Source: Epiperipatus broadwayi (lineage: Eukaryota > Animalia > Onychophora). From it: a stretch of 64,000 nt of DNA. Location: assembly GCA_028023455.1 (NCBI GenBank), contig JAQFVV010000010.1:17174001-17238000 (forward strand), written 5' to 3'. Under the pieces are notes generated by a model, which searched no databases, had not been told where the DNA came from, and saw nothing but the letters and a program-made list of their open reading frames with translations. A program made the translations under genes and the position numbers. Below, in pieces: positions 15,874 to 36,700 of the stretch (the first letter of the stretch is position 1; each line of letters opens with the position of its first letter).

Positions 15874-18780
15874 GATTAAATATAGATGTATTTATTATCA
15901 ATTGTTTTAAATGGATCAAGTGATTTACATTATTAAAGTTTTATTGATCATACAGCAAAATGTAAAATAATGTCATTGTTTTGTTTTTAACAAATAATAT
16001 ATTAGATGTATGTTGTAATACAATTGATATTTTATTATTTAAAAAGATGGGATGGATTAAAATACGTGTTAATAGATTTATTTCTTAATTCATTTATTCA
16101 TATTTTATTTTACTGCATGCATTTAACAACCAACATATAAGCATAAATGAATAAATAGTAAATTATTGTTTCATGTGCGTATTGTGCAAATGCATGTGTT
16201 TTTGTTTATGCAATTAAAACAATTTCCGAGTATAGATATTTAAGGGTATCATTTTATATAATAATTATGTTTAATGGTTAAAATGTATATTTTGTATTGA
16301 ATAAATATATATGCAAGAAATATTTATTTATTTATTTTATTCAAAATAAGATTTCAAAATTGTAAATTCCTTGTACTATTTTTTCTTTAAAAAAATTGTT
16401 TAAAAGTTAAAAAAAAAAAAAACATTTTGTTCTGGAATGCAGACTGCAACTAAGAAAACTCTTTATTAAATAGAAATTGATTCTATGTAGCAAAAAAAAA
16501 TGTGGAATTGAGTGAATCTATAGATGGTATCTAGGGTTATGACATCAGTATTTATTTCATCATGGGGAAACTGATATAAAAGTACATGACATGATGTTTT
16601 TCGAGAGATCTGGAATGCCTGGAAATTGTGTCAAAACATATGATAAGATCCAAATATATATTGTGTGGCATTGAATAACTAAAATGGATATAAAATAAAA
16701 ATAGATGTAAAATAAAATGAACAATAGTGTAATTTACTAAAGGATTTAAGTTGCTCAATTTTCACATAATCACACACAAAAAAAAAAATATCACAGGGAT
16801 TTACCATGGATATATTTTTTAAAATGTTTACTTCACTAATTTTATAATATTCTGATTATGAACAATACTTTCAGAATTTGGACAAGCTTTAAATATATAA
16901 TTGGTTAATAATACTTCAGTTTGCATCAGGATTAATGAGAAGCACCAAGACTTGTGACCTATTATTATTACTGTGCTGACTGTATTGAGTGTATTTTATA
17001 TAAATAATCCATTAAAAAAATATTCAACGATCCTTGGATGAATTTACCAAGTCGTATATATTTTTTTATTATATAGTTATGTTTACATATTCATTTAATG
17101 TGTAATGTGTGTGTTAGCATATATTATATAAATAGATTAACCAAAAAGAAAAGTAAAAAAATTTCAAAATAGAATTTTAAATATATTTATTAAAATTTAA
17201 TCTTAATTTTATATAACATTTTAAAAGTGTGTTTTATTCGTTTCATTATTTATCTATAAATTGAAAAGCCATATATTTAAATATAAATACAAAATCAGTT
17301 ATATTTAATAAAAATATATTATTCGTTTATGTTTATAAAAGATATCAGTTGTACTTAAATCGGTTGTCTTTCATTTATAACTGTAAAATTATTAAGAAAC
17401 AAAAAAGAACAGACAAGTCTTTTTTTTATATATAAAGATTTATTTAATACTGATTATGCAAATAAATATTTTATTTCTAGCTATCCATGCATCATTCTTT
17501 GCATTACATCATAGAGAAGTCAGAAATTTAACAAACTGTATCTTTTAAGTTATTTTTATCAATTATCAATTTATAAATTATCATTTTTTTATGTTAATAA
17601 ATTTTATTTTATTAATTAAATTTGAATCTCATGATTATTTCTAATTTATTGTGTAATAGTACCCAGGTTTAAACCCTGTTACAATGGAATGAAATATTAT
17701 CCACCGACTGCCCTGGATAAGCATAATTCCTATAAATTGGCTTCAATATGTTCGTACGAGGAGTGATATATATATGTCAGAGAGAGAAATAGATTAAAAA
17801 ATTAAAAAAAAAAAAAAGAAAATATATAATTATTTGTTTTGGAACATATTTAGAAATATGTTGTTATAAAAAGTAGTAATTGAGAGATACAGTTATAAGC
17901 AAATATATATTTTTTATTATTACTTGTTCATGTGTTTTATTTTAATGAGGGAAATGAAAAGACTTTGCTATATATACCTCTAGGCAATTCTTTGTTATTT
18001 GTTACAGTACTTAGCATCTCTAAATTCCGAAAAATCATCATAATTGTACCGTGGACAAAGAAACCAAAAATAAAAATGTAAAAAGCATTCCAGAGGGGGT
18101 AAAAAAAAATTGAAATGCTGATAAACTGAAATGGGAGATCCAAAAAATAAATTGATTAAAATCTCGGAACCGTAGAGAACAGAAAATACTTTGAAAAAAG
18201 AAAAATATATAGGTTTTTTTTTTCTTGTATTAATTTGTACGATTATGCATTCGTTAACTATTGAAATTCGCTGAAGTAACAAAATTGCAGAGAAAATGTT
18301 TTTCTTTGATATTTATTGAAAATGTCTATGATCCTAATGATGGGGTGAAAACTACATATGTGTATGGCTATCACTCCATGCTCTAAGTATATAGCTGTTC
18401 CTGCTCGCTGCCTGCCTTTACGAGAACCTCATGGACCTTACAGATCCACTGCCCAAGAGGAAAAGAAAAATGTTGAACTTCTGATGCTGATCAAACTTCC
18501 ATTAAAATATTTGTTAATCACTGTCGTCATTATTCTTTATTCCCAGTCAATGCCACCAAATGGATGCTCGTGCCGGACTTATGACAATAGCAGACATTTT
18601 CCTTTCTCCAACAAAAAAAACCTATAGATTTCTTCTTTGGATCACTAACTCGGAATGACGTAAGCTTATGTGGAAGCAAACTTATCTTTATTAAAATTCC
18701 CAAAAGTAAATATAATTTTCTTTGCATTAAGTGAACTTAGAATTGCATATAGTTATCCTCAAAAATGCTTATTCATTGTT

Positions 18781-18920
18781 AAAATGATTTATTAAACTGT
18801 ATGTATAATTGTATTCTTTGACATTATATTCCATATTTACATGATTTAAATATTTAAAATGATTTATTAAACTGTATGTATAATTGTATTCTTTGACATT
18901 ATATTCCATATTTACATGAT
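18781..18920 (+). repeat. 75-bp tandem duplication within the 5' LTR
   Basis: aaaatgatttattaaactgtatgtataattg...catgat at 18781 and 18856. Confidence 0.9.
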
Positions 18921-19307
18921 CTATTATATTTAATACATTTTGTTTTTCTTGTATGTTAGATTTTGATATGTGAATTATATATTTTTTCTTTTATGAATAT
19001 TTAATTTAATAAAATAAGAAAGAATAAAATTGTGTACTTTTTGAAACCGAATCATTTATTGAACATTAGTGAATAGATTTACGCTTGCCTATTTCTCTTT
19101 TCCTGCCAACATATCTTGCAAAACTAGCTAAATACATCTTACACGAGTAGGCACCTATATTAAATATACGTTAAACTCTGTTAAGTTTGATGAAGAAATT
19201 TTATTGTTCATTAATGGAATGAATACTCAGAGGAGGGGAAGTTAAAGCAGCTAATTTTAAATTATACACAATCTAGTTTGAGAGATATAGAAAAAGATAG
19301 TTCATAT

Positions 19308-22046
19308 TGAAACAGTCGACCTTAGTTTGTCGAGTTTCACCTTCTACCATTGTCCATGTGTCATCATGCTCCATTTTTTTAATGTAAAACATATATTATG
19401 GGAGCGTATATACGTAATTAAAAATATTAGGTAATTTTGTATTTTTTTAAAATTGAATTTTTCTATTTTAATACGTTGTAATTTTCTTTTTCATAAAACA
19501 AAATGCAAATTCAAGATAACTGTCTGAAATAATTAAAGGGGTGGGGAGTTTGTCTCATGATTTTAAACCAGGAAATTATAAATTAAAATTAAAAAAGTAA
19601 AAACTAAAACAAAGCTAATGCATTTTAGTTAGCTATTAACATTGTTTTAGTCAAATCCATTTCCAAGCAGGAAATTGATTTCAATTGATTTTAGACAGTT
19701 ATCTTAAAACTGAATCTTTATTAACAATAGAGTAAAGATTCTCCTAAAATAGAGATCCATTAGAGACAGGAAATCTATTTTAGAATAAATATTCTCTAAG
19801 GGGCCAAAAACTGATATAAATAAGGGGCCAAAAACTGATATAAATAAAGCTAAAAATCTATTATGTTAAGAGTTGGGTCAGTTGTTGCTAGGTGACTTCA
19901 CGTCCGTTTGAAACTTGGGAGAACCAAATTGCCATCCGCCGTCTTCAGCTGAGCCTTGCCGCAATGTAGCCCCAAAAAATGCCGCCCACGCAGCAGATTC
20001 GCCGATGCTTTCAAAGAATCCTGAGGTAACCAGCCAAAAGACTATATAACCGCCTTATCCACTTTTAACTATGTAATTTAATTTGTAAGATAATAATTTC
20101 GTTATATTTAATGTTTTCTTAAAGCTTTGTTAATCGTTATATCAATTCTTTGCTGCCTAATTATTATGCAATCCAACTCTGCCTAATTATTATGCAATCC
20201 AACTCATGCTTATTATTATTATTTTTATTAGTTAGTGCGGTTATGATTTAAGTTTAATATTTTTATATTTTCTTCCTTTATTTATATATTCCACTAAAAA
20301 AAAACTTAATCTTACGAACTTCTATTAACAAGGGAAGGGGTGGGGAATTAAAATGAGTTCTTATTAATTATTTTAAATACATCGTAAGTTTGGGTTATAC
20401 TTTAAATGAATATATTTTTATCTAAATGTTTTGTCGTAAATTTATACGAAACGTATAAATATTTTGCAATCCGGGGTGGATATTGGTGTCTGATAGTGTT
20501 ATAAAATTTCTTATTGATCATCATCGCCATAAAGACTGGTGATTTAACTTTATTTTGTAATTTGCATCCTTGACTTTTTTTTAATTACTATATTAAAATA
20601 TTGATTCAGGAAGGGGGAAGCAGTGCAAGCTTTATTAATGCTAGTTAATTGATAACCAAGACTCTATATTACATAGGTCATTATACTCGCATGTTATTAC
20701 ATATTTGTTAAACCATTTAAGGCTTTTCTTTAATAGTTAAATTTATTGATTTTATATTATTATGATAGCATTGCTAGCATATATCTAATTATTTATAAGC
20801 CGCATACGGCTTTGATCTGATTTGCCTATACCTCACTCCAGGGAATCACGATCATTTCGCTAGTCATTCTCTCCTCCAAATATATATATTATATACTGCT
20901 TTGAGTCGCCTGTACTTCACTCCAGGGATTCAAAGCTTCGTCGTTCGTATCCTCGTCATAAAAAAAAGTCTACGTTTACTTCTAGATTATTCAGATTAGA
21001 GTAGATGAAGCTATGTATAGTTTGCCGTGGTACGGCCTATAGTATCTTCCTACCAACCTTCTTCTTCCTGTACTGTCTCAGCAGAAAGCTGGCGTGTACC
21101 ATCATTATAAGAAATTGGAGAATGACCTTATCCTGGCCAAATGTGCCATTTCCTCTCAATGATATTATGCTAACACCGCCATTTCTTACAGTTAGTTTCA
21201 GCCTGATAATATTATGCTAACACCGCCATTTCTTACAGTTAGTTTCAGCCTGTTTAGCAAAATAAATCGTAATAATGGTGTTTAAACCCAATTTCTCGCG
21301 AAGCTGCCCTCCCTCTTTACTGAAATAAACTTTTCTCGCAAATATTAAGTTTTCGCTATATCCTGTCAAATGTTGAAAATATAGAAGAAATAATGTTTAA
21401 TACTGCCGATCAAAAATGTATCTGCATTATAATTATTATAAATGAAATATCTAAATAAGAACAATAAACTTATGTATTAAAGTCTTTTAATTAGCGAAAC
21501 TCGATTATATCTTTATAAATGTATTTTTATGTATAAAACGGCCACCAAACCATTCCGACAAATCCATCTCTTGTAACCGCCGCACTAACTTAATACTTGT
21601 CAATATCAATATAATCTTAATAATACTATTTAATGTGTATAATCAAAACAGTTTTATAAGCGTAGAGTCAATTATATATATCTAAACTCATCATCAATTA
21701 CGTTCAAATAAACATTTATATTTTACACTTAATCCAGTTGTTCGAATCTCATTAATGATATTTATATTTATGTATACTCGGAACTTAATATCTTGGGTTC
21801 ACTCAATCTCTCATCATCATCATCAGTTGAGTCAAATGTAAAATGTTGTAGCACCAGGCCAGGATGTAATGAATTTATGTGGTATCACCGTAGGTGTTGT
21901 TCATAATGTTATAGTTTTGGGGAATGGGCAAATAGGTTAGAATTCATGATTGCTCCTGACCTGTGTATCTTGCGCATGATTGATTCGGGGTACTTTTGCC
22001 TAGATTCTAAATCTTGTTGGATGGACATACATTTTCGACCGATATA
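19308..22046 (+). mobile_element. 2739-bp solo-LTR-like element nested in the Gypsy 5' LTR
   Basis: An exact ATAT TSD (19304-19307 and 22047-22050) restores the uninterrupted 3'-LTR sequence gttcATATacgcaaa. The termini TGAAACAGTCGA and TCGACCGATATA are degenerate inverted repeats. TATAAATA lies at 19839 and TCAGTT at 19878. A minus-strand decayed ORF starts at ATG 22032. Short internal tandem duplications sit at ~19800, ~20153 and ~21160. Confidence 0.8.
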
Positions 22047-22540
22047 ATATATGCAAATTTCACTGCATATATCCATTCATCTGATAGATTTCCTCCCAAC
22101 CCTAAGAGTGAGTAACTAGGGTCGGGCACCTGAGCAGAGGTATTTAAGATCATTTAGAATATTAGGAAAAGTATAATTCTTGCTGTATTAGTGAGATTGG
22201 TACTTGAGGTCGGTTGCTACCTGATGCTCATAAATATACTTTATCCAGATAATTTTTTTGCTTGTTTGTTTTTAATAGTGGCTACTGCAAAAAATTCTTA
22301 ACAACCTGATATAGGATATGCGCATGATAGATATAAGTCGTATTTATAAAATTTCCTCATGAAATTGATTCATATTTGAATTTGATATGGTAGACAGTGT
22401 TCAAATACTGCCTACAGGTGTTATGGCAACTAAACAGCCATAGTTTTATATTTGTTATTGCGTGAGGTACACTTACTCATTTTTAAACATATTTATTTTG
22501 TGCAGACATTGTAATTAATACAGAGGGTCGCCTGTTAAAA

Positions 22541-22561
22541 TGGCTTCCCAACAAATGGGGC
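22541..22561 (+). promoter_or_regulatory. Primer-binding site, degenerate tRNA-Lys type
   Basis: TGGCTTCCCAACAAATGGGGC directly follows the 5' LTR and resembles the tRNA-Lys PBS TGGCGCCCAACGTGGGGC. Confidence 0.75.
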
Positions 22562-22846
22562 TGCGAATGTAGGAGAATGGCAGGTTGGTAAGAAATTTAT
22601 TTTTAATTGTTTTGTCTTGTTACTATTGCATTAAAGAATAATGCACCAGATAGGGTAGAAATTGGAGTGAGGATTAGAGGTTCAACAGTAGGGCAGGTGA
22701 CAATCAACATAGTACATTGTGAGCTGGGTGATGAGCCTGGCACATTATAAAGAGAAAAGTAAAAAAAAAAAATTTTGATATTATATTCACTCCGAAATAA
22801 AAGTTTGTGTTTCCCAGCGATATAGAAAACACAAAAATAGAAATAA

Positions 22847-25800
22847 ATGAAAACCCATTCACGAGAAAGAAAGGAAAAGAAGATAGACCAGGACAGCAGA
22901 GATAAAGCAAAAGAGACAGGCATAATGGATATTATAATAGAAAAATTACAGGAGATAAAGGGGTATTCAGAAGACAGAAGGAAGAGAGACCGAGAGAACA
23001 TATCATCAGTTTACAAAAATATTTTAGGAGATATGGGATGCTGGAGAAATGCAAAATAATCATAGTACATCAACCTCGAACATTCCAGGAGTATGATCCA
23101 CCTCGAAGAAGCTGTTTTGGACAAAGAAACAGCAGGAAAGTATTAAACTGTGAATCATAAATCAGAAGTTTCAAAGAAAAGTTATGTACAGTTTTTCAAA
23201 CAAGTGGCCACCCTAAAAGCATTAGAGAGGTGTAAACTATTTGAAAATCAGATCATAAGAATGGTATGCAGAAATTTGCCATTGGAAATAAAATGCTTGG
23301 TGGAGATTAGAGGTAATAGGTTAGCTAAAGAAACTGACAAAATACTAAATCAAATTGAATAGATGAGCAAATGTTGGGAGGGGGGGTTGGAGACAGAACA
23401 TTCATGGACAAATGTAAAATGGATATGGCAAAAAAGGGGAGAAGAGTTGGTACACCAGGGAAAAGAAAAACGGGAATTTGGTGTGTTCATGAGAAGTCAA
23501 GGTTCCATGCTATGCTAAACAGGGGTGCCCAAAGTTTTGTATTGAAATAGATGAAATAGAAATAAAAACCCTCATAGATTCAGGTAGTCAAATACTATAT
23601 AATAAACTGGTGGGAAACAATCTTGCATATGAACTCTTTTATTGAAGGCCGCACAAGTAACAATGGCAAACAATAAGAGGGCCAAGGTAGAACCCAAGCA
23701 GATATGGATGGACTTGTGGCACCATATTAGGGTCTGATTTCCTACACAAACACAAATGTGTTATGAAAGAGAGTCATACATGAAGGAGAAATAATTAAAT
23801 TCCTGGTGCTGAACCTATACCATCCAATAGGGGTTATAAATGTCAAAGAACATCTAACGGACAGCGTAACAGCAAGAAAGAAAGGAAACCAATCCAGAAG
23901 AGGAGTGCATGCTGCAGAAAAGTATGGCCGCACTTTTTCAGATGTATCCAGTGTAATTAAAGGGTGTGAACAAAGAATTAAAATAAACCAAAATCAACCT
24001 TTCCAGTCTAGGTCATACCCAGTTCCACATCAATAGCGGGACAACGTTAAGCAACAAATCGATCAAATGGTAAAGTGGGGAATTATTTTGAAGTATTCCT
24101 CCTCATATTGTAATCCACTGGTGGTTGTAAAAAAAGATGGATCAGTCAGGCTCCCACCACCTATGCAGGAACTGTTGGGGAGATTTAAGAAAAAGAAATA
24201 TTTTCAGCTTTTGACTTGACCATCAGTTACTGGCAAATCCAACTCCATCCTGAAGACCAGAAATACATCACCTTTAGAAATGATGATGATTATTCTTATC
24301 AGTTTAACCGTATGCCATTCGGCATAATAAAGAGCAGTGTGTTTTTTGAGATGCTTGGACCAAGTATTATCGGAGGTCAAAAAGTTGGTGATAGTGTATG
24401 TAAACAACGTATTAGTGGCATTGGCAACCATTGAGGAACATTTTAAGTACATAAGAGTTATTTTTCAAAAAATGCCTAAAGAAAGGAATTACGGTTAAAA
24501 AAAACATGATATGTAAGGATGAAGTCACATTTTTAGGCCATGTGATGGGTACCCAAGGGATCAAACTCCACCCAGACAAGATTCAACCTATGAGAGAATT
24601 TCCTAAACCTGTCTCAGAAGCAAATTCGATCATTCCTGGGCCTCTGTAATTTTTACAACAGGTTTTACGATGAGTTGATAAAACAGAGAGAGCCTTTGGT
24701 CAGATTGGTAAGGAAAAATATCCCCTGGAAGTGGACTCAATAACAAGAGAAAGCCTTTGAGATAAAGAGGGGTTTCGAGAAACAAGTCATGTTGGCTTCC
24801 ATGTTGGATTTCCCTGATTTCAAGAAGTCATTCATCATACAAACAGACAATAGTGGGTATGGGCTAGGGGTCACATTATCTCAGATGCAGGATGATGATC
24901 AGGTGGGGATATTGTACTTTACAAGCCAATTGCTTAAGGGAGCTTCACTTCACTTCCCCATATTGAAAAGGAAGATCTCGCAATCGTCTGGGCATTCCAG
25001 AAGTTCAGGACTCTTGTTGGTATCAAAAATGGTTGTCACTACTGATTATAAAAGTTTGGAGTTTTTGAATCACAGTTACTTGATCAACAGTCAGCTGATT
25101 CACTGGGGTCTATATCCGCATGAATATCACTATACATAAAATATTGCAAATAGTCATAACCTTGCCCAATCCCAACCATGCCATTTGAATAGAGAGAACC
25201 TGTATGTCGCCAGTTTAAAACAGGATAAACGAAGAAGTGGAACAAGACCTGGTCCAATTATCCAAACAGGAAGATGGACAATTGAAGACATTGATTAAGC
25301 AGCTAGAGAAAAAGGTAACAACAAAACTTAGGATTGGTGGGAAACACTAAATGAGACAATCTATATTACAATACAAAATTCACAAGGATCAAGAGAAGTG
25401 GAAGCCCATCTTACCACATCAGATAAGAGATGCCGTTATCACCCATGCATACCAACTCTATGGTCATTACAACACACCCAAACCTGAGTGCTTGCTATGG
25501 TACTAGTTTTATTGGCCCGGAATGCATACTAATATTATGGCTGTGGTAGGCCAGTGTGAGATATGCCAAAAGGCAAAGCCAGCAGTTATGTAATGCCTAT
25601 GACTACCATAATTCTAACAAAGCCCTGGATTACTATGATCCGTTGTCAGGCTTTTAACAGAAAAAAGTATCTCATAGTGGTATAACAGAAAAAAGTATCT
25701 CATAATGGTATATGATCTATTTTCGAAATTCATAGTCGCATACCCGATACCCTAGGTAAACACTAGAAACACCATAAAGGTGCAAGAAAATAACTATTTC

Positions 25801-26467
25801 CCCACTGTGGGAAAACCAAAAAGTTAGTACTATCAGATCATGGTACTCTGTTCATATCAGGGCAATGGTGTAGGTAGGTACAACAATAGGTAATCAAGCA
25901 TGTGTTGATATCCATCCATAAACTGCAGTCAAACCCACGTGAAAGGGTCATGTGAGCATTAGGTCAGCTATTTAGAATCCATCTTCCAATGAACCATTGA
26001 GGTTGGGTCAAGCAAGTTTCACAGGTCATCAATTATATCAATTGGTCGGTCAATGATTCAACCAGGTTTGCTCAAATACAACTGCATTTAGGCAAATATG
26101 TCCATCGATTACTAAAAACCCTCTTGCAGAAGTGAGTCCCCGATAGAGGTAGAAGCCAATAGAGCTCAAGGTTACCAGACCCTTATGAAAAGGAGACTCA
26201 ATTAGAATAAAAGATCAGTGGGTACACAACAATGATTCCAAATAGGGTACAATGGTAATGGTGAAAATGCCACATGTTAGTGATCTTGGGAAGTTCGTCT
26301 GTCAAAAGTTTTGTAATTTATATGAGGGCCCGTTTGTTATTGTTCGGCGCCAGGGAAACACTGCATTTTGGGTAGACATTGGGTCAGAGATTAAAGGGTC
26401 TTACAATGCTAGGGCTTTAAAACCCATGCCAAGGGTTTTTTTTTTAGCCCTCAAAAGATCATTTTGA
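22847..26467 (+). pseudogene. pol: Decayed gag-pol of the Gypsy element (many stops and frameshifts)
   Basis: Protease LIDSGS at 23571-23588. RT motifs SYPVP, YCNPLVVVKKDGSVRL, DLTISYWQIQL..EDQKYITF and YQFNRMPFG, with YVDD decayed to YVNN at 24397-24408. RNase H FIIQTDNSGYGLG at ~24835. Integrase HAYQLYGH..CEICQ at ~25441-25570, SDHGT at 25833, SNPRER at ~25930 and YEGPF at 26321. Confidence 0.92.
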
Positions 26468-26479
26468 CATCTTTCCACT

Positions 26480-26490
26480 GGGGAGTGGGC
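26480..26490 (+). promoter_or_regulatory. Polypurine tract
   Basis: GGGGAGTGGGC ends 3 nt before the 3' LTR TGTAACA. Confidence 0.8.
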
Positions 26491-26838
26491 TATTGTAACA
26501 GTAGCTGGATTTAAACCCTGTTCGAATGGAATGAAATAGTATCCATTGGCTGCCTTGGATAAGCATAGTTCCTATAAAGTGGCTTGAATATGTTCGACTA
26601 TTATATATGAGGAGTGATATATATATGTCAAAGAGAAAAATATTAAAATTTTTTTTTTAAAAAGAAAAAATATAATTATTTGTTTTGGAACATATTTAGA
26701 AATATGTTCTTATAAAAAGTAGTAATTGAGAGATACAGTTATACGCAAATATATAATTTTTTTATTACTTGTTCATATGTCTTATTTTAATGAGGGTAAT
26801 GAAAAGACTTCACTATACATTTCTCTAGGCAATTCTCT

Positions 26839-27851
26839 GGAAACTAATTACTAAGCCGGGCTTGACTGCTTGATGGTATTCTGACTAGCCAAGAAAGCTT
26901 TGGAAATGCCCTTTATGTAGCCTAGACTTACGGCTAAGAAAACAGTTCTGTTTATCTTAGCAATTGCACACCACTTGATAGCGTTGCACAGAAATATTAT
27001 GGCTTGTTTTGTGCTTCGTGACACTTTATGTGAATTCCACAATTCACAGTTGGCTATCGTATCATCTGATAGTGTCTGGATTTCAAGTAGTCACAACTTT
27101 TGAAATCTCCATGGTAGAGTAATTTCATTTATACTTAAATCAGGCAGTATGACCCTAAAAATTGTCACACCGTCCCCACTCTTCACTACGTGCAAAACAT
27201 TGGCAAAAGGGTAGGGACGAACAGGATTTGACCTAGCTCACATGAAAACTGACCCTTTCACAAGAAAATATGAGACAAATAAAATGGCGCATGGCAGCAA
27301 GGTATTCGATTCACACAGATTTCTAAGACAACAGGTTGTGATTCTATGACATAAACCAGTACAAAAAAAAAAATAAAAAAGTCAGAAGTTTTGATCTTAA
27401 ATGTATTGGGGGAGGGGGGGGGAGTAGAGGGAGGGAGGTTGAGAAATATTTTGTCTTTTTGGTTTGTTTTTATTTTTTAAAAAAAGGTAATAGAAATTGG
27501 TTTTAAAAATAAAAGTTTTACTATATCAGCGGCAAAGATGTGTTTGTGTATAATTTTGATTATTATAGTAATTTGCTAGTAGGACGGAACAAAAAAAATC
27601 CTAAAAATAAAAAAATTAAAGATGTAGTAGAAAAAAACAAAAGAATAAAATAATTTAATCAATAGTAAAAAGTGATTTTAAAAATTGTTAAATAGATATC
27701 GCATAATACAAATAAAGCCAAAAAAAAAGTTGCCATATAGGGAAAAAAAGTCACCATATTTTAAAAATCGCAGCCTGGTAACTTTGCATTGTATTGTTTT
27801 TGACTGGCAACAAAGCCATCAAGCGACCAGACCCGCTAAGTAATTAGTACC
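26839..27851. mobile_element. Non-autonomous TIR DNA transposon (GG...CC termini) inserted in the 3' LTR
   Basis: Imperfect ~35-bp TIRs: GGAAACTAATTACTAAGCCGGGC..GCTTGATGG on the left, and the right end's reverse complement GGTACTAATTACTTAGCGGGTC..GCTTGATGG. Flanked by ATTCTCT and ATTCTTT (a 7-bp TSD with one mismatch), where the 5' LTR has a single ATTCTTT. Superfamily uncertain. Confidence 0.8.
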
Positions 27852-28224
27852 ATTCTTTGTTATTTGTTGTAGTATGCTCTAATTTCTGAGAAATTATAAT
27901 TGAATGTACTGTGGACAAAGAAACCAAAAATAAAAATGTTAACAACATTCCAGAAGAAAAAAAAATGACTGGGAAGATCAAAAAAATCATTTTGCCACCA
28001 AATGGATGTTCATTCCGGACTTATGCCAATAGCAGATATTTTCCTTTCTCCAACAAAAAAAAAATAGATTTCTTCTTTTGGATCAAGCAAACTTATTTTT
28101 ATGAAAATCCCAGGTTCCTGAAGGTAAATATAATTTTCCTTGCATTAAGTGAACTTAGAATTACATATTGTTACCCTCAAAAATGTTTTTTTATTGTTAA
28201 AATATTTATTAAACTGTATTGTAT

Positions 28225-28571
28225 TACATTCAAAGATCAGCCTTTCAAGCTAATTGTGCATGTGTCTTCTGCAAGTGTTAAATAATAAATGAATATTTCA
28301 CTCCACAATACAAGATATAGTATTTATGCAGGAATAAAAGGAATCCTCTTATTCCTATGACTCAAATTCTTCAGATTTGCTCATATAAAAGAATTTGAGT
28401 CGTAAGAATAAGGATTCCTTTTATTCCTACATAAATACTATATCTTGTACTGTGGAGTGAAGTATTCATTTATTATTTAACACTCACAGAAGACGCATGC
28501 ACAATTAGCTTGAAAGGCTGTTCTTTGAATGTAATACAATTGTACGCATAGCATCATATAAAAATAAATGC
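28225..28571. mobile_element. Palindromic (fold-back) insertion with 16-bp TSD
   Basis: ~147-bp inverted arms (28225-28371 and 28389-28536) plus a 35-bp tail. TTAAACTGTATTGTAT occurs at 28209-28224 and 28572-28587. Absent from the 5' LTR. Same family as 44783-44966. Confidence 0.9.
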
Positions 28572-31500
28572 TTAAACTGTATTGTATAATTGTATTCTTT
28601 TACATTCTACTCCATATTTATATGATCTATTATATTTAATAAATTTTGTTTTTCTTTTATGTTAGATTTCAATATGTGAATTATAGAATTTTTCTTTCAT
28701 GAATATTTAATTTAATAAAATAAAAAAGAATAAAATTGTCTAATTACCTTGAAACCGTAATCATTTATTGAACCTTAGTGAATAGATTTATCGTTTATGC
28801 TTGCCTACTTCTCTTTTCCTGCCAACACCTCGCAAAACTAGCTAAATACATCCTATACGAGTAGGCACCTATATTAAATATATTTTAAATCCGAACCTTA
28901 AGTTTGATGAAATAATTTTATTGCTTATTAATGGAATGAATGCTCAGAGGAGGGAAAGTCAAAGCAGTTAATTTTAAATTATATGCAATCTAGTTTGAGA
29001 GACATAGAAAGAGGGGGGAAAGATCGTTCATATACGCAAATTTCACTGTATATCTCCGTTCATCTGATAGGTTTCCTCCCAGCCCTGAGAGTGAGGTAGC
29101 TAGGTCGGGCACCTGAGTGGAGGTATTTTAAGATCATTTAAAATATTAGGGAAAGTATAATTCTTGCTGTATTAATGAGATTGGTGCTTGAGGTCAGTTG
29201 CTACCTGACACTCATAAATATTCTTTTTTTGGAAGATTTTTTTGTTTGTTTTACTGATGGAATAGTGGCCACTGAGAAAATTTAAATTTGATATGGTAGG
29301 CAGTGTTCAAATACTGCCTACAGGTGATATGGTGACTAAACAACCATAGTTTTATATTCGTTATCCCATGAGGTCTACATATCCATTTTTAAACATATCT
29401 ATTTTGTGCAGACATTGTAATTGATACTGGGGATCGCCTGTTAAAATTGATTACATTATATCATATCCCACATATTACTGGTGAATAGTTGCTTGAAATT
29501 ATTGGTAATCAAATATCATATAGATATTGTAACTTTTGCTTTTCATTATCAATTTTCATCACAAAAATAAAATATCCATATGCAGGCATAATTTTTAAAA
29601 CTATTAATATTAACATTATCTCATTAATATATTTTGTGTTCAATTTTCTTTAAAAATTTGATGTAATTTTTATCAAATATACTCAATGTATTTAAAAACA
29701 TTACTTAATAAGTCAGTTTTCATTATGTATTGAACATTTAAACATATATAAAAACAATTTTATTCTGAAAATAATTTTTTTAAAACAATTTTGTTAAGAA
29801 TGTTTGTAGATAGTTTATTTTATAATATACACATAATACATTATTTCATTTTAAAATTAATTTTTTTCTTGCATGTACATGTTTATGACTGTTCTGCCTG
29901 TATATATATATTAAAAATACATATGATAAAGCATTTAGTACTATTCACAGATTTAGATTATCTATGGATTCCATTGTATATTGTTTATAGGGGGAGTGTA
30001 ATTTTTTAACAAGTGATGTTTTTAATACATTTGTATTTTTTTTTTAATACCTGCTGATTTGTTTGCAATTAAAAAAATAGATTTTAGAAGATATATGGAT
30101 AATTGACTGAACTTACATATAAGTAACAACAATCTAATTTACAAGTATTAATTTCTTTCATTCACATATTTAATATCATCCACTTTTGATAAATGCAATA
30201 ATGATTATTAATATTTTTTTATTAGATTAGATATTACTGTACAATTTTTTGCCCAGATTGGGACCTGAACCAACTGTTAAGTGCTGTTTCAGCAGAAATC
30301 CATCTCGAAGACCATTTATTTTTTCAGATATCTTTATCCAGGTGTTCCACATGTAACAATGATAAAAATAAATTTTAAATATATCTAATATACATATGTG
30401 GGTGTGTCTAAAATCAAGGTCAGTAACCAGCTATTTGTTTTAATGTACAAATAATGAATTTAAAAAAAATCACTAAAAAATCTTCAATAAATTATTGTCT
30501 TCACTTGTCTAATGAAAAATAAATAATAGGATATAAAATACTAATTTATTATATGCACAAACATAACCTTGCCCTTGCACATAAAGATCTAAATCTTTAT
30601 AAAGAGACATATAACTAGATGAAAATATTATGTTATGCTGAAGTGAACTAATAAATAAATTGTATATTCTTTGACTTTCATTCATTTGTTCTTTTGTGTA
30701 TTTTTTAATTGTAAACACATATCAAATTTGTTTCACAGTTTGCTCTTCTATTCAATTTCATCTATTATGCTTTAACTCAAACATATGGCATCTTTTACTA
30801 TTAATATTTGAATACTTCAGTGTGTATTGTTTTTGAAATTGTTCACAACAAATAGTTCTGGTATAAATACTTTATACATAGCCATGGTGATAAAATAGAT
30901 AAGCAGAAAAATACATAGAATGATAATTTATTGGGAAGGTGTAACAATGTCACATTGTATTGATGCAAATTTGTTTAAACTATTTTGAATTTAAATAAAA
31001 CATACTTTATCAGTGGGTATATAAGATTTAAGCATTCGTTGTATTTGGGAACTAATCAACTATTGCCTGTTCGGTGATAGTGGGAGAAAAAAATATTTAT
31101 TGTATAGTTCCAACTATATAAAAACAAGATCCCTCTTAAATAATCAAATATTCAAATATATATTCATTATCCACTTAGGCAAGAAAAAAGAAATCCAATT
31201 TTTTTTAAAAAAAAATTGTTCATTTATTCTTGTTCATCTTTCTCTTAATTATTTACTTAGATTTTGCAAGCATTCTCAAGTGCTATACATATGATTATCA
31301 GCCAGATGATGGTTCTGATTAGGAGCCAAAAAAAGTTAATGTGTATCAAGTATTTTATTATAAAACTTGCAATTAATAGAATAGTTTACTTAGAATTCTT
31401 GACAATGCCTATTAATAAAAAAATCCATAAAATCTGCAAACATCAAAACCATACATAAATGATTTCTGTATTATTTATATATAAGTAATCATTCAAACTT

Positions 31501-33714: not shown

Positions 33715-36700
33715 CAACAAAATAAAATACATAACTATATAAATAATACCATAAAAAATGTAAACAATAAAAAACTAAAAACAACATAAAATATATAACA
33801 AAACCTAATAAAACTGAAATAAATATAATTAAATCCAATTAAAATAAACCAGTTAATATAAAATAAAATATACAATATAAACAGAATATAAATATAAAAT
33901 AGGTATTCTTGAATATGTATTGAAACAGTCAGATCTATCAATCATCCTGTTTCACCTACTATTTTATATAATAGTATTTATTTCCATAAATATACACCCA
34001 AGTTCGCGTATATCAAGTTAAAATTAAACATAAATATTGTAATAATCATGTGTGCATGTATTATAGCGTTCATCATTCAACACTTACGTATGCGTGTGAT
34101 AAATTGGTGTATACACACATACGTACTAATTTATTGAATTAATATAAACCTTGCTGTATGTATAACGAAAATGTACATATATACAGAAAAGAAGTAATGC
34201 TATAGGTTTAAAAGCATTATAAATTTAGTTTTATTTTCATATAAAGATAAATTTCAGTTAAATATGTTACATATAGAATAAGATGTTTACGAGTTTTAAA
34301 TATGTTTTCTTAAAAAAAAAAAAATGAAATAAAAATAATCTTTTTTGCTGAATTTTGACCCAATTAAATGTAAAAGACGAAAATAGATTTTAAAATAATT
34401 AAAATAAATTAACCTGGGTTAAAATCAAGGTAACCACCTTTAAAAAAAAAAAAAAATTGATAACTTAGCAAGAGTTCCTGCCTTTGCTAAAAATATTTGT
34501 AAAGTACACGAGAAAAACAAATCTAAGACCGAGAAAGTGGTAAACAAGTTTTGTGGCCAATGTGAAGGGGAGAGGTCAATATAAAAACCTTTTGCTTCAG
34601 CTATTTTGTATCATAATCATTCTTGCTTTATTTTGTTCACTTTAACAAGTTATGTTGAAATTTTCCATGATGAGAGCTGTTGAGTAGTGAGCGATAGATT
34701 TGCTATCTCCTGGAATACTGAGCTATGAAATGGTAGAACATCAACACCCTCATCCCGAGTTACAGAAGTAATGCTGAGGCAACCCAAGATCAAGCGACCA
34801 TGCAAGTCAACTGTAGAAGACAGATTGGTAATCGATTTCTGCAGATTTTAATTCATCATTTAAACTAAGTCTAAAACCTTTAAAGCTAATTAAATTAATA
34901 TGTAAACAGCCACTTTTATTTAAACTATTTATTTAAACTTTCAAAATATTAATTTCTAAAACTCAAATTAAATGTGTCTTTTGTTTTATCTTTTAATTTT
35001 GTAAGTCTTGCCTAATTTAATCTAAACTAAGCAAAATTAAAGCCAAATTCTAATTTTCACTTACGCAAATGAATAACAAATAGTTATTATTCTTTCTAAA
35101 ACTAAGCCTATGCCTATATTATTTGAATTATGCATTTATTGATTTATGCTGTTTTATTCAGAGTGGAGTTTGCTAATATTTAGTGTAATTAGCGAGAGAT
35201 GATTAGATGCTCTCACGTTTATTTAATTCTTCGTTTATTAATGCATATACTTAACTCCCTTCTGAAAAGAATAGATATATAAAACTTAATTTATATATAT
35301 AATTAAGCTGTTACAGCTACTTAATAAGATCGATTTGCTTTAAAGTAAATTATTTAGTTAGTATTTAGCAGACATGATAAAATACAGCATATTATTAGTA
35401 TTTAAACTTGTAATGCTCCCTAAATATGCTGTAGTTGTCCTTAATTTCATACTAATAGCTATACAGATACCTTAACAAACTAGATTTTATTATATTCCTT
35501 TAGTAGCATAATTATTAATGCTATCTCTATGAACTAGCTTATAGTGGTCTCATGGAATGAAACTAAAGAGTTGCGTATAAATTTTAGTTATGTAATTATA
35601 TAGTCAGCGGGGCAAATGTGTTCTTAGGAAGCACATATATGCCTTTACTCCTTGCTGTTATTCTTGTATAAAATGGGCTTGGTTGAAGGTCAACCCATTT
35701 AATTAGTTCGGACAGCATTCATATTTAGGACTGGAGCACAAGGATCTAGATGATTTATTTGTTCATAAGCTGTTCCGATCACCTGGACTAAATGTATCAA
35801 TTTCACAGCAAATAGTATGGTCCATTATGTGGTATGAATCCCATGATTAAGCGCATGTTCAAGATACACAGACTCAGATTAGCAGAGTATCTGAAGTCAT
35901 ACTACTAAACACCAGTTCATCCCTCTGTAATAATTAAATATTTCAGCTTTGATCTTAACTTATATCTAGTTTCGTAAGTTTATTATCTGTATAGAGAGAA
36001 ATGTTAGCTCATCGTAATAAGAATAAGTTAGCTATAATTCGTAATAATCACTTCTGCAATCTAACTATTGCAAATCTTGCAATCTATAACATGGCATAAT
36101 TAAAGCATAGCTAATCGTGAATTGAAATATGAATATATTTTCTAAATGTAACAAATTCTCTACCATAAATAATTTGTGGCTCATGAACATCATCCTCCTC
36201 ACCTGTGTATGAGACAGCTTTATAATTCATTTTATATTTCTCTTTCATTTACTTCCCTTAAATTTGGCTTATATTAAAATTTATAAAACGTAATTATGCT
36301 TAGTGTCTCATTTCTAGCTCATGAGTAATTAATTTCAGAGTCACAGTCAAAATTAATAACATTAGTTCATTAGATCATATCTCCCGTGTGGCTATGGTTT
36401 ATGAGAATATTTGTTTACTACATTTTAGTCTTATGTTTCACTGTTGTGCTACTGCTGGCACATAAATTAAAGAAATACGAGTGTAGCCTCATATATGTCA
36501 TCCGTAAGATAGGAAATCTCTGAGCTTTGGTAAAGGAACTGGGGTGAGATTGGATTTGAGATCTCCACAACTTCATCTCGATCAGCCTTGGGATAATTTG
36601 CTAAAACTCTGGATTTTGTTGCACGAATGTACAGATATGACTGTTACATAGTACACAGTTAAGAATACACATGTATAATTTATATTTTGTTTATATTGTA

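Follow-up and report, generated by a model that had tools for sequence, protein, structure and literature searches.

A nested solo LTR from a probably non-autonomous, LARD-like retrotransposon family in Epiperipatus broadwayi

The 2739-bp element at positions 19308–22046 of the window (the whole 64,000-nucleotide stretch of Epiperipatus broadwayi DNA analysed here), whose sense strand is the + strand, is an insertion nested within an LTR of another retroelement. It belongs to a repeat family whose complete members consist of two LTRs around a short interior, and it has no coding capacity. It sits in an older Ty3/gypsy element, within the 5′ LTR, contains no antisense gene, and is very probably the solo LTR of a non-autonomous, LARD-like LTR retrotransposon.

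The insertion, its empty site and the host element

The window is very AT-rich (22–39% G+C in 2-kb steps) and contains two sets of direct repeats that bracket the element, pairing 17652–19296 with 26494–29013 and 22047–22546 with 29030–29452. The spacing of the repeats drops from ∼9717 to 6983 between the first set and the second, a difference that corresponds to the element together with one ATAT. The element is flanked by ATAT on the left (19304–19307) and on the right (22047–22050), and a paralogous empty site is found in the 3′ LTR of the host element, where both flanks meet across a single ATAT at 29030–29033. The empty site reads gttcATATacgcaaa and the filled site gttcATAT[element]ATATatgcaaa; window positions 29020–29040 (...gatcgttcATATacgcaaatttc) correspond to the two flanks without interruption. 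Thus, the repeat spacing and the empty site at 29020–29040 confirm the insertion, its limits and the 4-bp duplication to the base, and the exact ATAT target-site duplication proposed in the preliminary description holds. No second copy of the element was found elsewhere in the window.

The host is an older, degraded element of the Ty3/gypsy type that extends from 17650 to 29446 on the + strand, in the same orientation as the nested LTR. Its 5′ LTR is split by the insertion into a left part (17650–19307, +), which matches 26494–29013 in blocks of 77–88% identity, and a right part (22047–22540, +), which matches 29030–29446. The interior (22541–26493, +) begins at 22541 with a degenerate tRNA-Lys-like primer site, a match equalled by 5 of 2000 shuffles. 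It continues with pol remnants that contain many stops and lie in the + strand order reverse transcriptase, RNase H and integrase SH3. Pfam searches of the ORF pieces of this interior gave RT_RNaseH with an E-value of 8.6e-13, together with SH3_Tf2-1 (E = 0.0014) and RVT_1 (E = 0.0098), both under the Pfam cut-offs. A purine-rich tract, GGGGAGTGGG, lies directly 5′ of the 3′ LTR (26494–29446, +), which was identified from the direct repeats and which retains the intact target site at 29030–29033. Since the two host LTRs align only in blocks, 77–88% identical and broken by large indels, the host element must be old. An uninterrupted target site survives in the window because the insertion entered the 5′ LTR of the host only, leaving the 3′ LTR without it.

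The pol remnants start a few hundred bases to the right of the element and on the same strand, and the element could on that ground be taken for the 5′ LTR of a gag-pol element lying downstream (22600–26470). However, no second copy of the element follows the pol region, and both of its flanks are contiguous in the true 3′ LTR (28898–29128). The empty-site paralog refutes this assignment, the element being nested inside the 5′ LTR of that very gypsy element, and the probability left to it is negligible.

A family of elements with two LTRs and a non-coding interior

A search of the organism's own 5.6-Gb assembly gave 6142 first-look candidates, of which 40 were scored. All 40 corresponded to the LTR unit at 19308–22046, mostly at full length and with 86–90% BLAST identity. 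A 25-mer from the 5′ end of the LTR occurs 685 times in the genome at two or fewer mismatches, and its reversed control 0 times; as this strict count is a lower bound, there are at least 685 LTR copies. The sample that was read comprised 29 LTR copies and 12 interiors, selected as best matches. In a MAFFT alignment of the window copy with the 29 others, mean pairwise identity was 92.9% in ungapped columns, and the window copy had a mean identity of 91.4% to the rest. The 29 fetched copies share the termini TGAAACAGTC...CGACCGGTACA; all LTR copies start with TGAAACAGT and usually end with ...TTTTCGACCGGTACA. Besides the window copy, the 3′ end could be read in 28 copies, of which 27 close with ACA and one (L023) with ACT. 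A perfect 4-bp duplication, ATAT in 12 cases, surrounds 21 of the 26 copies that have both ends but no interior flank; the other five match at three of the four positions.

The LTR nature of the repeat became apparent from copies lying next to an interior. Two of them (L024 and L030) are preceded by a purine run (...AAGTGGGAAGGAA), beyond which come ∼970 bp and then the 3′ end of another copy. With the 967-bp interior as a query, which could return the non-coding type only, 634 first-look candidates were obtained and 40 scored; these 40 are colinear with all or part of the query, have no large insert and are 76–93% identical to it. In 9 of the 12 interior loci that were fetched (L031–L042), the 3′ part of an LTR lies upstream and the 5′ part of an LTR downstream, and LTR starts are found 3.6–3.7 kb apart in the genome, as paired copies. 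A complete element is therefore an LTR, an interior of ∼0.97 kb and a second LTR, ∼6.3 kb in all, of which 5.4 kb is LTR. The 3′ LTR, beginning with TG, is directly abutted by a polypurine tract, AAGTGGGAAG[G/A]AA, in all seven junctions displayed. Over ∼300–400 bp of overlap, the two LTRs of one element are 93.5–98% identical in eight of nine elements, and LTRs of different elements are on average 85–89% identical and never more than 94%; at one two-LTR locus (L041) the LTRs are only 79% alike. The outer ends of whole elements are flanked by a perfect 4-bp duplication in three of four cases (ATGT, ATAT and CTAC), and in the fourth by one matched at three of four positions.

The leader of these elements carries TGGACGCCCATCTGTGGGGC (in L037, TGGCACCCAACATGGGGC), which is similar to the sequence complementary to the tRNA-Lys(CTT) 3′ end; in the genome's own tRNA-Lys(CTT) that end reads ...GGTTCGAGCCCCACGTTGGGCGCCA. 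The L037 leader agrees with this complement at 16 of 18 nt, and most other copies give a bulged match. The local alignment score was equalled by 0–11 of 2000 shuffles in seven of nine leaders, and by 56 and 74 in the remaining two. The tRNA-Lys-like site is not adjacent to the LTR, as the textbook layout would have it: it begins 22–25 nt past the LTR end, behind a T-rich spacer. Despite this displacement, the integrated LTRs end cleanly at ...ACA. In this family and in two or more further LTR families from the genome, a bulged tRNA-Lys-like site stands 20–25 nt past the LTR end behind a T-rich spacer. It is conceivable, although we think it doubtful, that these are true primer sites. If the displaced site truly primes, the integrase would have to trim ∼23 nt from the end of the linear cDNA, or priming would be non-canonical. 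An odd replication architecture would then be common to abundant elements of Epiperipatus broadwayi, a matter of the family interior and not of the solo LTR in the window. ARAGORN predicted no tRNA genes in the 64-kb window, and in L043–L046 it found no intact tRNA; partial, retro-copied pieces of tRNA-Lys are present there.

The preliminary description had read the element as solo-LTR-like, but had reasoned that copies never flanking gag-pol would point to a DNA element instead. No gag-pol was met in the sample, yet the structure is that of an LTR retrotransposon. A non-autonomous cut-and-paste DNA transposon, Ginger-like or similar, would share with this family the 4-bp duplication, the short imperfect inverted ends, the uniform length and the lack of gag-pol between copies. 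It would not explain why copies pair in direct orientation on either side of a conserved interior that has a polypurine tract and a tRNA-Lys-like site, nor why the whole LTR–interior–LTR unit has a 4-bp duplication of its own; moreover, the terminal inversion covers only 9 of 12 nt, and the two members of a pair resemble each other more closely than unpaired copies do, the signature of reverse transcription. The two-LTR structure refutes a DNA transposon, to which we give hardly any credence. Thus, the paired LTRs, the polypurine tract, the primer-like site and the duplications around whole units fit reverse transcription and integration. The full-length two-LTR copies that the preliminary description had suggested looking for do exist, with a non-coding interior of ∼970 bp, and the solo-LTR reading of 19308–22046 (+) is borne out by the 29 full-length copies with their termini and 4-bp duplications, and by the two-LTR elements with their tract, tRNA-Lys-like site and mutually similar LTRs.

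The element could also be the LTR of an autonomous family, the 0.97-kb interior being the commonest deletion derivative and the copies with gag-pol having gone unsampled. The sample was indeed narrow (of 6142 LTR and 634 interior candidates, 40 each were scored), and the interior query was confined to the non-coding type. Against this, the only two LTR copies with an interior flank, L024 and L030, both hold the non-coding interior, the scored interiors run colinear over the 967-bp query or a part of it without a large insert, and tblastx detected no similarity between the family interior and the gypsy pol of the window. We consider an autonomous family unlikely.

At equal stringency, 685 LTR starts were counted genome-wide, as against 19 sites at which a polypurine tract runs into an LTR start, and complete copies are thus greatly outnumbered by solo LTRs. 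The matching ATAT flanks place the window copy among the latter. Its history as a solo LTR of a LARD-like element would have begun with integration of the gypsy-type host, as the divergence of the host LTRs suggests. The LARD-like element then entered the 5′ LTR of the host and duplicated ATAT, the insertion documented above, having presumably been mobilised in trans by the proteins of an autonomous element, given a family without gag and pol. Recombination between its LTRs probably then removed the interior and one LTR, which would account for a single LTR between intact duplications. The copy finally decayed, through the change of its terminal CA to TA, private duplications at ∼19797–19846 and 21159–21252, and a difference of ∼8.6% from its relatives. 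The autonomous partner probably belonged to a gypsy-type lineage whose LTR ends resembled those of the family and whose primer site was also of the tRNA-Lys type.

Termini, promoter candidate and antisense frame of the window copy

The window copy starts with TGAAACAGTCGACC and ends with TTTTCGACCGATATA. Its 5′ terminus, TGAAACAGTCGA (19308–19319, +), is an imperfect inverted repeat of the 3′ terminus (22035–22046, +), which reads ...CGACCGGTACA in the family and ...CGACCGATATA in the window copy; by eye, 9 of 12 nt are paired. The 3′ end of the window copy differs from that of the family by two transitions (GGTACA to GATATA), so that its last letters are TA, not CA. The TG/CA-type inverted termini given in the preliminary description therefore apply as regards the TG start, the CA end of the family and an imperfect inversion, but not as regards the end of the window copy itself.

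A TATA-like box, TATAAATA, at 19839 is present in 29 of the 30 copies and is followed ∼40 nt downstream by TCAGT. The window copy (L001), alone among the 30, has a 24-nt tandem duplication that includes the box (19797–19846, +), giving a second TATA at 19815. Since TATAWAW occurs 14 times per strand of the element, the motif by itself is at chance level in such AT-rich DNA, and in the alignment of 30 copies the surrounding DNA is about equally conserved. Of the plus-strand TATA and initiator proposed earlier, the conserved box and the downstream TCAGT are thus confirmed as sequences, and TATAAATA at 19839 is a reasonable promoter candidate, its use as a promoter being a prediction. A 47-bp tandem duplication, found by repeat analysis of the window, lies further downstream in the LTR (21159–21252, +), its two copies being 98% identical. 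An Rfam search with E-values up to 1 gave nothing within 19308–22046; the sole Rfam matches reported were microRNA-like ones, under threshold, to a foldback at 28329–28429.

An ORF antisense to the LTR, starting close to its 3′ end, had been proposed for this element. The ATG at 22032–22030 (− strand), 14 nt from the element end, is present and is conserved across copies. However, a TAG at 22002–22000 closes the frame at codon 11, after the ten sense codons MYVHPTRFRI (22000–22032, −). This TAG is common to the window copy and to 20 of the 22 other copies anchored at the ATG, the exceptions (L007 and L025) carrying indels. The peptide FTFDSTDDDDERLSEPKIL, quoted as part of the ATG frame, lies instead in the +1 frame with two stops ahead of it; the quoted frame is thus a join across a frameshift and several stops, and the acidic run in the peptide arises where a (TCA)n-like stretch is read in reverse.

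All three antisense frames contain stops in 30 of 30 copies. In the 3′-terminal 400 nt of the antisense strand, the longest open stretch ranges over the 30 copies from 31 to 59 codons (mean 38), against 48 ± 13 codons after shuffling; for the whole element in six frames it is 71 codons, against 80 ± 15. In a six-frame scan of the 30 LTR copies the longest open stretch did not exceed 89 codons, and none of six ORF pieces of the element had a Pfam match at, above or near cut-off. On the sense strand of the four interiors examined no open stretch reaches 60 codons, and their antisense open stretches are AT-rich, of low complexity and in frames that differ between copies. The LTR encodes no protein, and the antisense ATG opens a frame of 10 codons only. 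We reach this verdict because the stops are common to the copies, and not because protein relatives are absent. A family with no open frame, which the preliminary description had named as the outcome that would speak against its ORF, is in substance what the shared codon-11 stop reveals.

One might still suppose that the antisense frame is a real gene in decay, once intact in an ancestor or a master copy, given the conserved ATG 14 nt from the end and the resemblance of another LTR in the window, at 33921–36648, to the element near its 3′ end. However, the codon-11 TAG, present in the window copy and in 20 of 22 others, is the common state of the family, the second peptide is out of frame, stops run throughout, openness is at or below that of shuffled sequences and there is no Pfam match; the likeness to 33921–36648 is furthermore limited to the terminal ∼60 nt and to DNA. 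A decayed gene is accordingly most improbable.

That likeness was characterised separately. The first 10 nt of the element are identical to those of the unrelated LTR at 33921–36648, and the first 60 and last 60 nt of the two LTRs align better than any of 2000 shuffles, whereas the next 60 nt inward from either end align no better than shuffles. Between 19308–22046 and 33921–36648, blastn and tblastx gave nothing notable beyond the termini and no shared reading frame; the best tblastx match (E = 0.007) joins opposite strands of the two elements over 23 residues. Protein-level kinship with the element at 33921–36648 was rejected, the searches being empty past the termini. The resemblance is one of DNA-level conservation at the LTR ends, the pattern that related integrases acting on both families would produce. 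The host element, too, has LTR ends of this sort and a tRNA-Lys-like primer site.

Significance and relation to known systems

The value of these results lies mainly in annotation. A false protein-coding candidate is removed, the limits of two nested retroelements are now fixed, the apparent kinship of two unrelated LTRs in the window is traced to shared integrase-recognition nucleotides at their ends, and one abundant non-autonomous LTR family, with at least 685 LTR ends, is defined in a large, AT-rich animal genome. The family should be useful for repeat masking and for estimating the rate at which this genome removes retroelement DNA.

Antisense ORFs are known from HTLV-1 (HBZ), HIV-1 (ASP) and some plant gypsy elements, and these are open, conserved frames. 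The only thing that the element has in common with them is the idea of a gene opposite the LTR promoter; in the copies studied here its antisense frame, unlike theirs, is closed after 10 codons.

Drosophila elements of the gypsy group (Ty3/gypsy, Metaviridae) make 4-bp duplications, prefer targets of alternating A and T and use a tRNA-Lys primer site. The window family resembles them in its 4-bp duplication at alternating AT targets and in its tRNA-Lys-like primer site, but differs in that the site stands behind a T-rich spacer and in that the family has no reverse transcriptase or integrase by which to place it. Its likeness to Ty3/gypsy is therefore circumstantial, consisting of the 4-bp duplication, the tRNA-Lys-like site and termini like those of the host (TGTAACAGT), in a family without a reverse transcriptase.

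In plants, the TRIMs and LARDs are well-documented examples of LTR retrotransposons that lack ORFs but retain their LTRs, their primer site and their polypurine tract. The LARDs, or large retrotransposon derivatives, were described in Triticeae and form a structural class of non-autonomous LTR retrotransposons. The window family is like them in its long LTRs (2.7 kb here), its conserved non-coding interior with a putative primer site and a polypurine tract retained, its absence of gag and pol, its high copy number and its many solo LTRs. It differs in belonging to an animal genome and in its shorter interior (∼1 kb), going by the LARD sizes generally quoted and the summary given in PMC3286476. 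LARD is used here as a structural label and not as the name of a lineage, and it implies no common descent for the window family.

Among animals, 38 families of non-coding LTR retrotransposons have been described in Culex quinquefasciatus (PMC3286476), and the mammalian MaLR elements are cited in that paper as LTR retrotransposons without ORFs. With these the window family shares the LTR–interior–LTR organisation, a tRNA-like primer site, short duplications, the absence of coding sequence and of an identifiable master copy, and matches in the thousands. The Culex elements have LTRs of ∼200–340 bp and tandem repeats in the interior (PMC3286476), whereas in the window family 2.7-kb LTRs make up most of the element. 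The family thus belongs to a known kind of ORF-less LTR retrotransposon, reported in animals as well, and there is nothing surprising in finding it here.

A displaced tRNA-Lys-like candidate primer site

In the fetched genomic loci that carry the ∼970-bp non-coding interior of the LARD-like family (L031–L042), the first 25–45 nt after the 5′ LTR hold a T-rich spacer followed by a tRNA-Lys(CTT)-type candidate primer site, which lies 20–25 nt past the LTR end. The same displaced candidate site was found in two further families (locus L044, 1470–1560; locus L045, 1470–1580). In textbook reverse transcription, a spacer between the LTR end and the primer site would belong to U5. Integrated 3′ LTRs terminate in ...ACA and lack the T-rich spacer, and the arrangement is therefore not the textbook one.

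The 3′ part of tRNA-Lys(CTT) is also present as DNA adjoining LTR ends, at L043 (1480–1540, minus strand), L044 (1470–1525) and L045 (1472–1525). The copies span 56 nt at L044 and, estimated by eye, ∼33 nt at L043 and ∼54 nt at L045, and all three include the CCA tail, which the gene does not encode. ARAGORN detected no intact tRNA at these three sites. These partial copies look like over-copied primers.

Copies elsewhere in the genome

One region of the assembly (G000:C6617:130741-138009) holds three LTR starts and two interiors of the studied family at a spacing of ∼3.6 kb and is a tandem LTR-interior-LTR-interior-LTR array. Two LTR copies, L020 (G000:C61) and L023 (G000:C12862), are 99% identical and share an identical right flank; some loci seem to be present in the assembly as haplotype or duplicate versions, and copy counts may therefore be inflated.

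The host element and a second LTR-like element

The 3′ LTR of the host gypsy element contains a 323-bp foldback (28218–28540), whose 130-nt arms show 95% complementarity. Since the corresponding part of the 5′ LTR has no counterpart, the foldback is probably a later MITE-like insertion; its microRNA-like matches in Rfam are sub-threshold. A further ∼1 kb of the 3′ LTR (26840–27851) is without equivalent in the 5′ LTR; one of the two LTRs has either gained this sequence by insertion or lost it by deletion.

Another LTR-like element, ∼2.7 kb long (33921–36648), belongs to a different family from the studied element, with which it has only terminal nucleotides in common, namely the start TGAAACAGTC and a related last ∼60 nt. 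The host element also carries a degenerate tRNA-Lys-like candidate primer site, TGGCTTCCCAACAAATGGGGCTGCGAA (22541–22567), and its LTR start, TGTAACAGT, is similar to that of the nested family, a likeness that may point to integrases of one common lineage.
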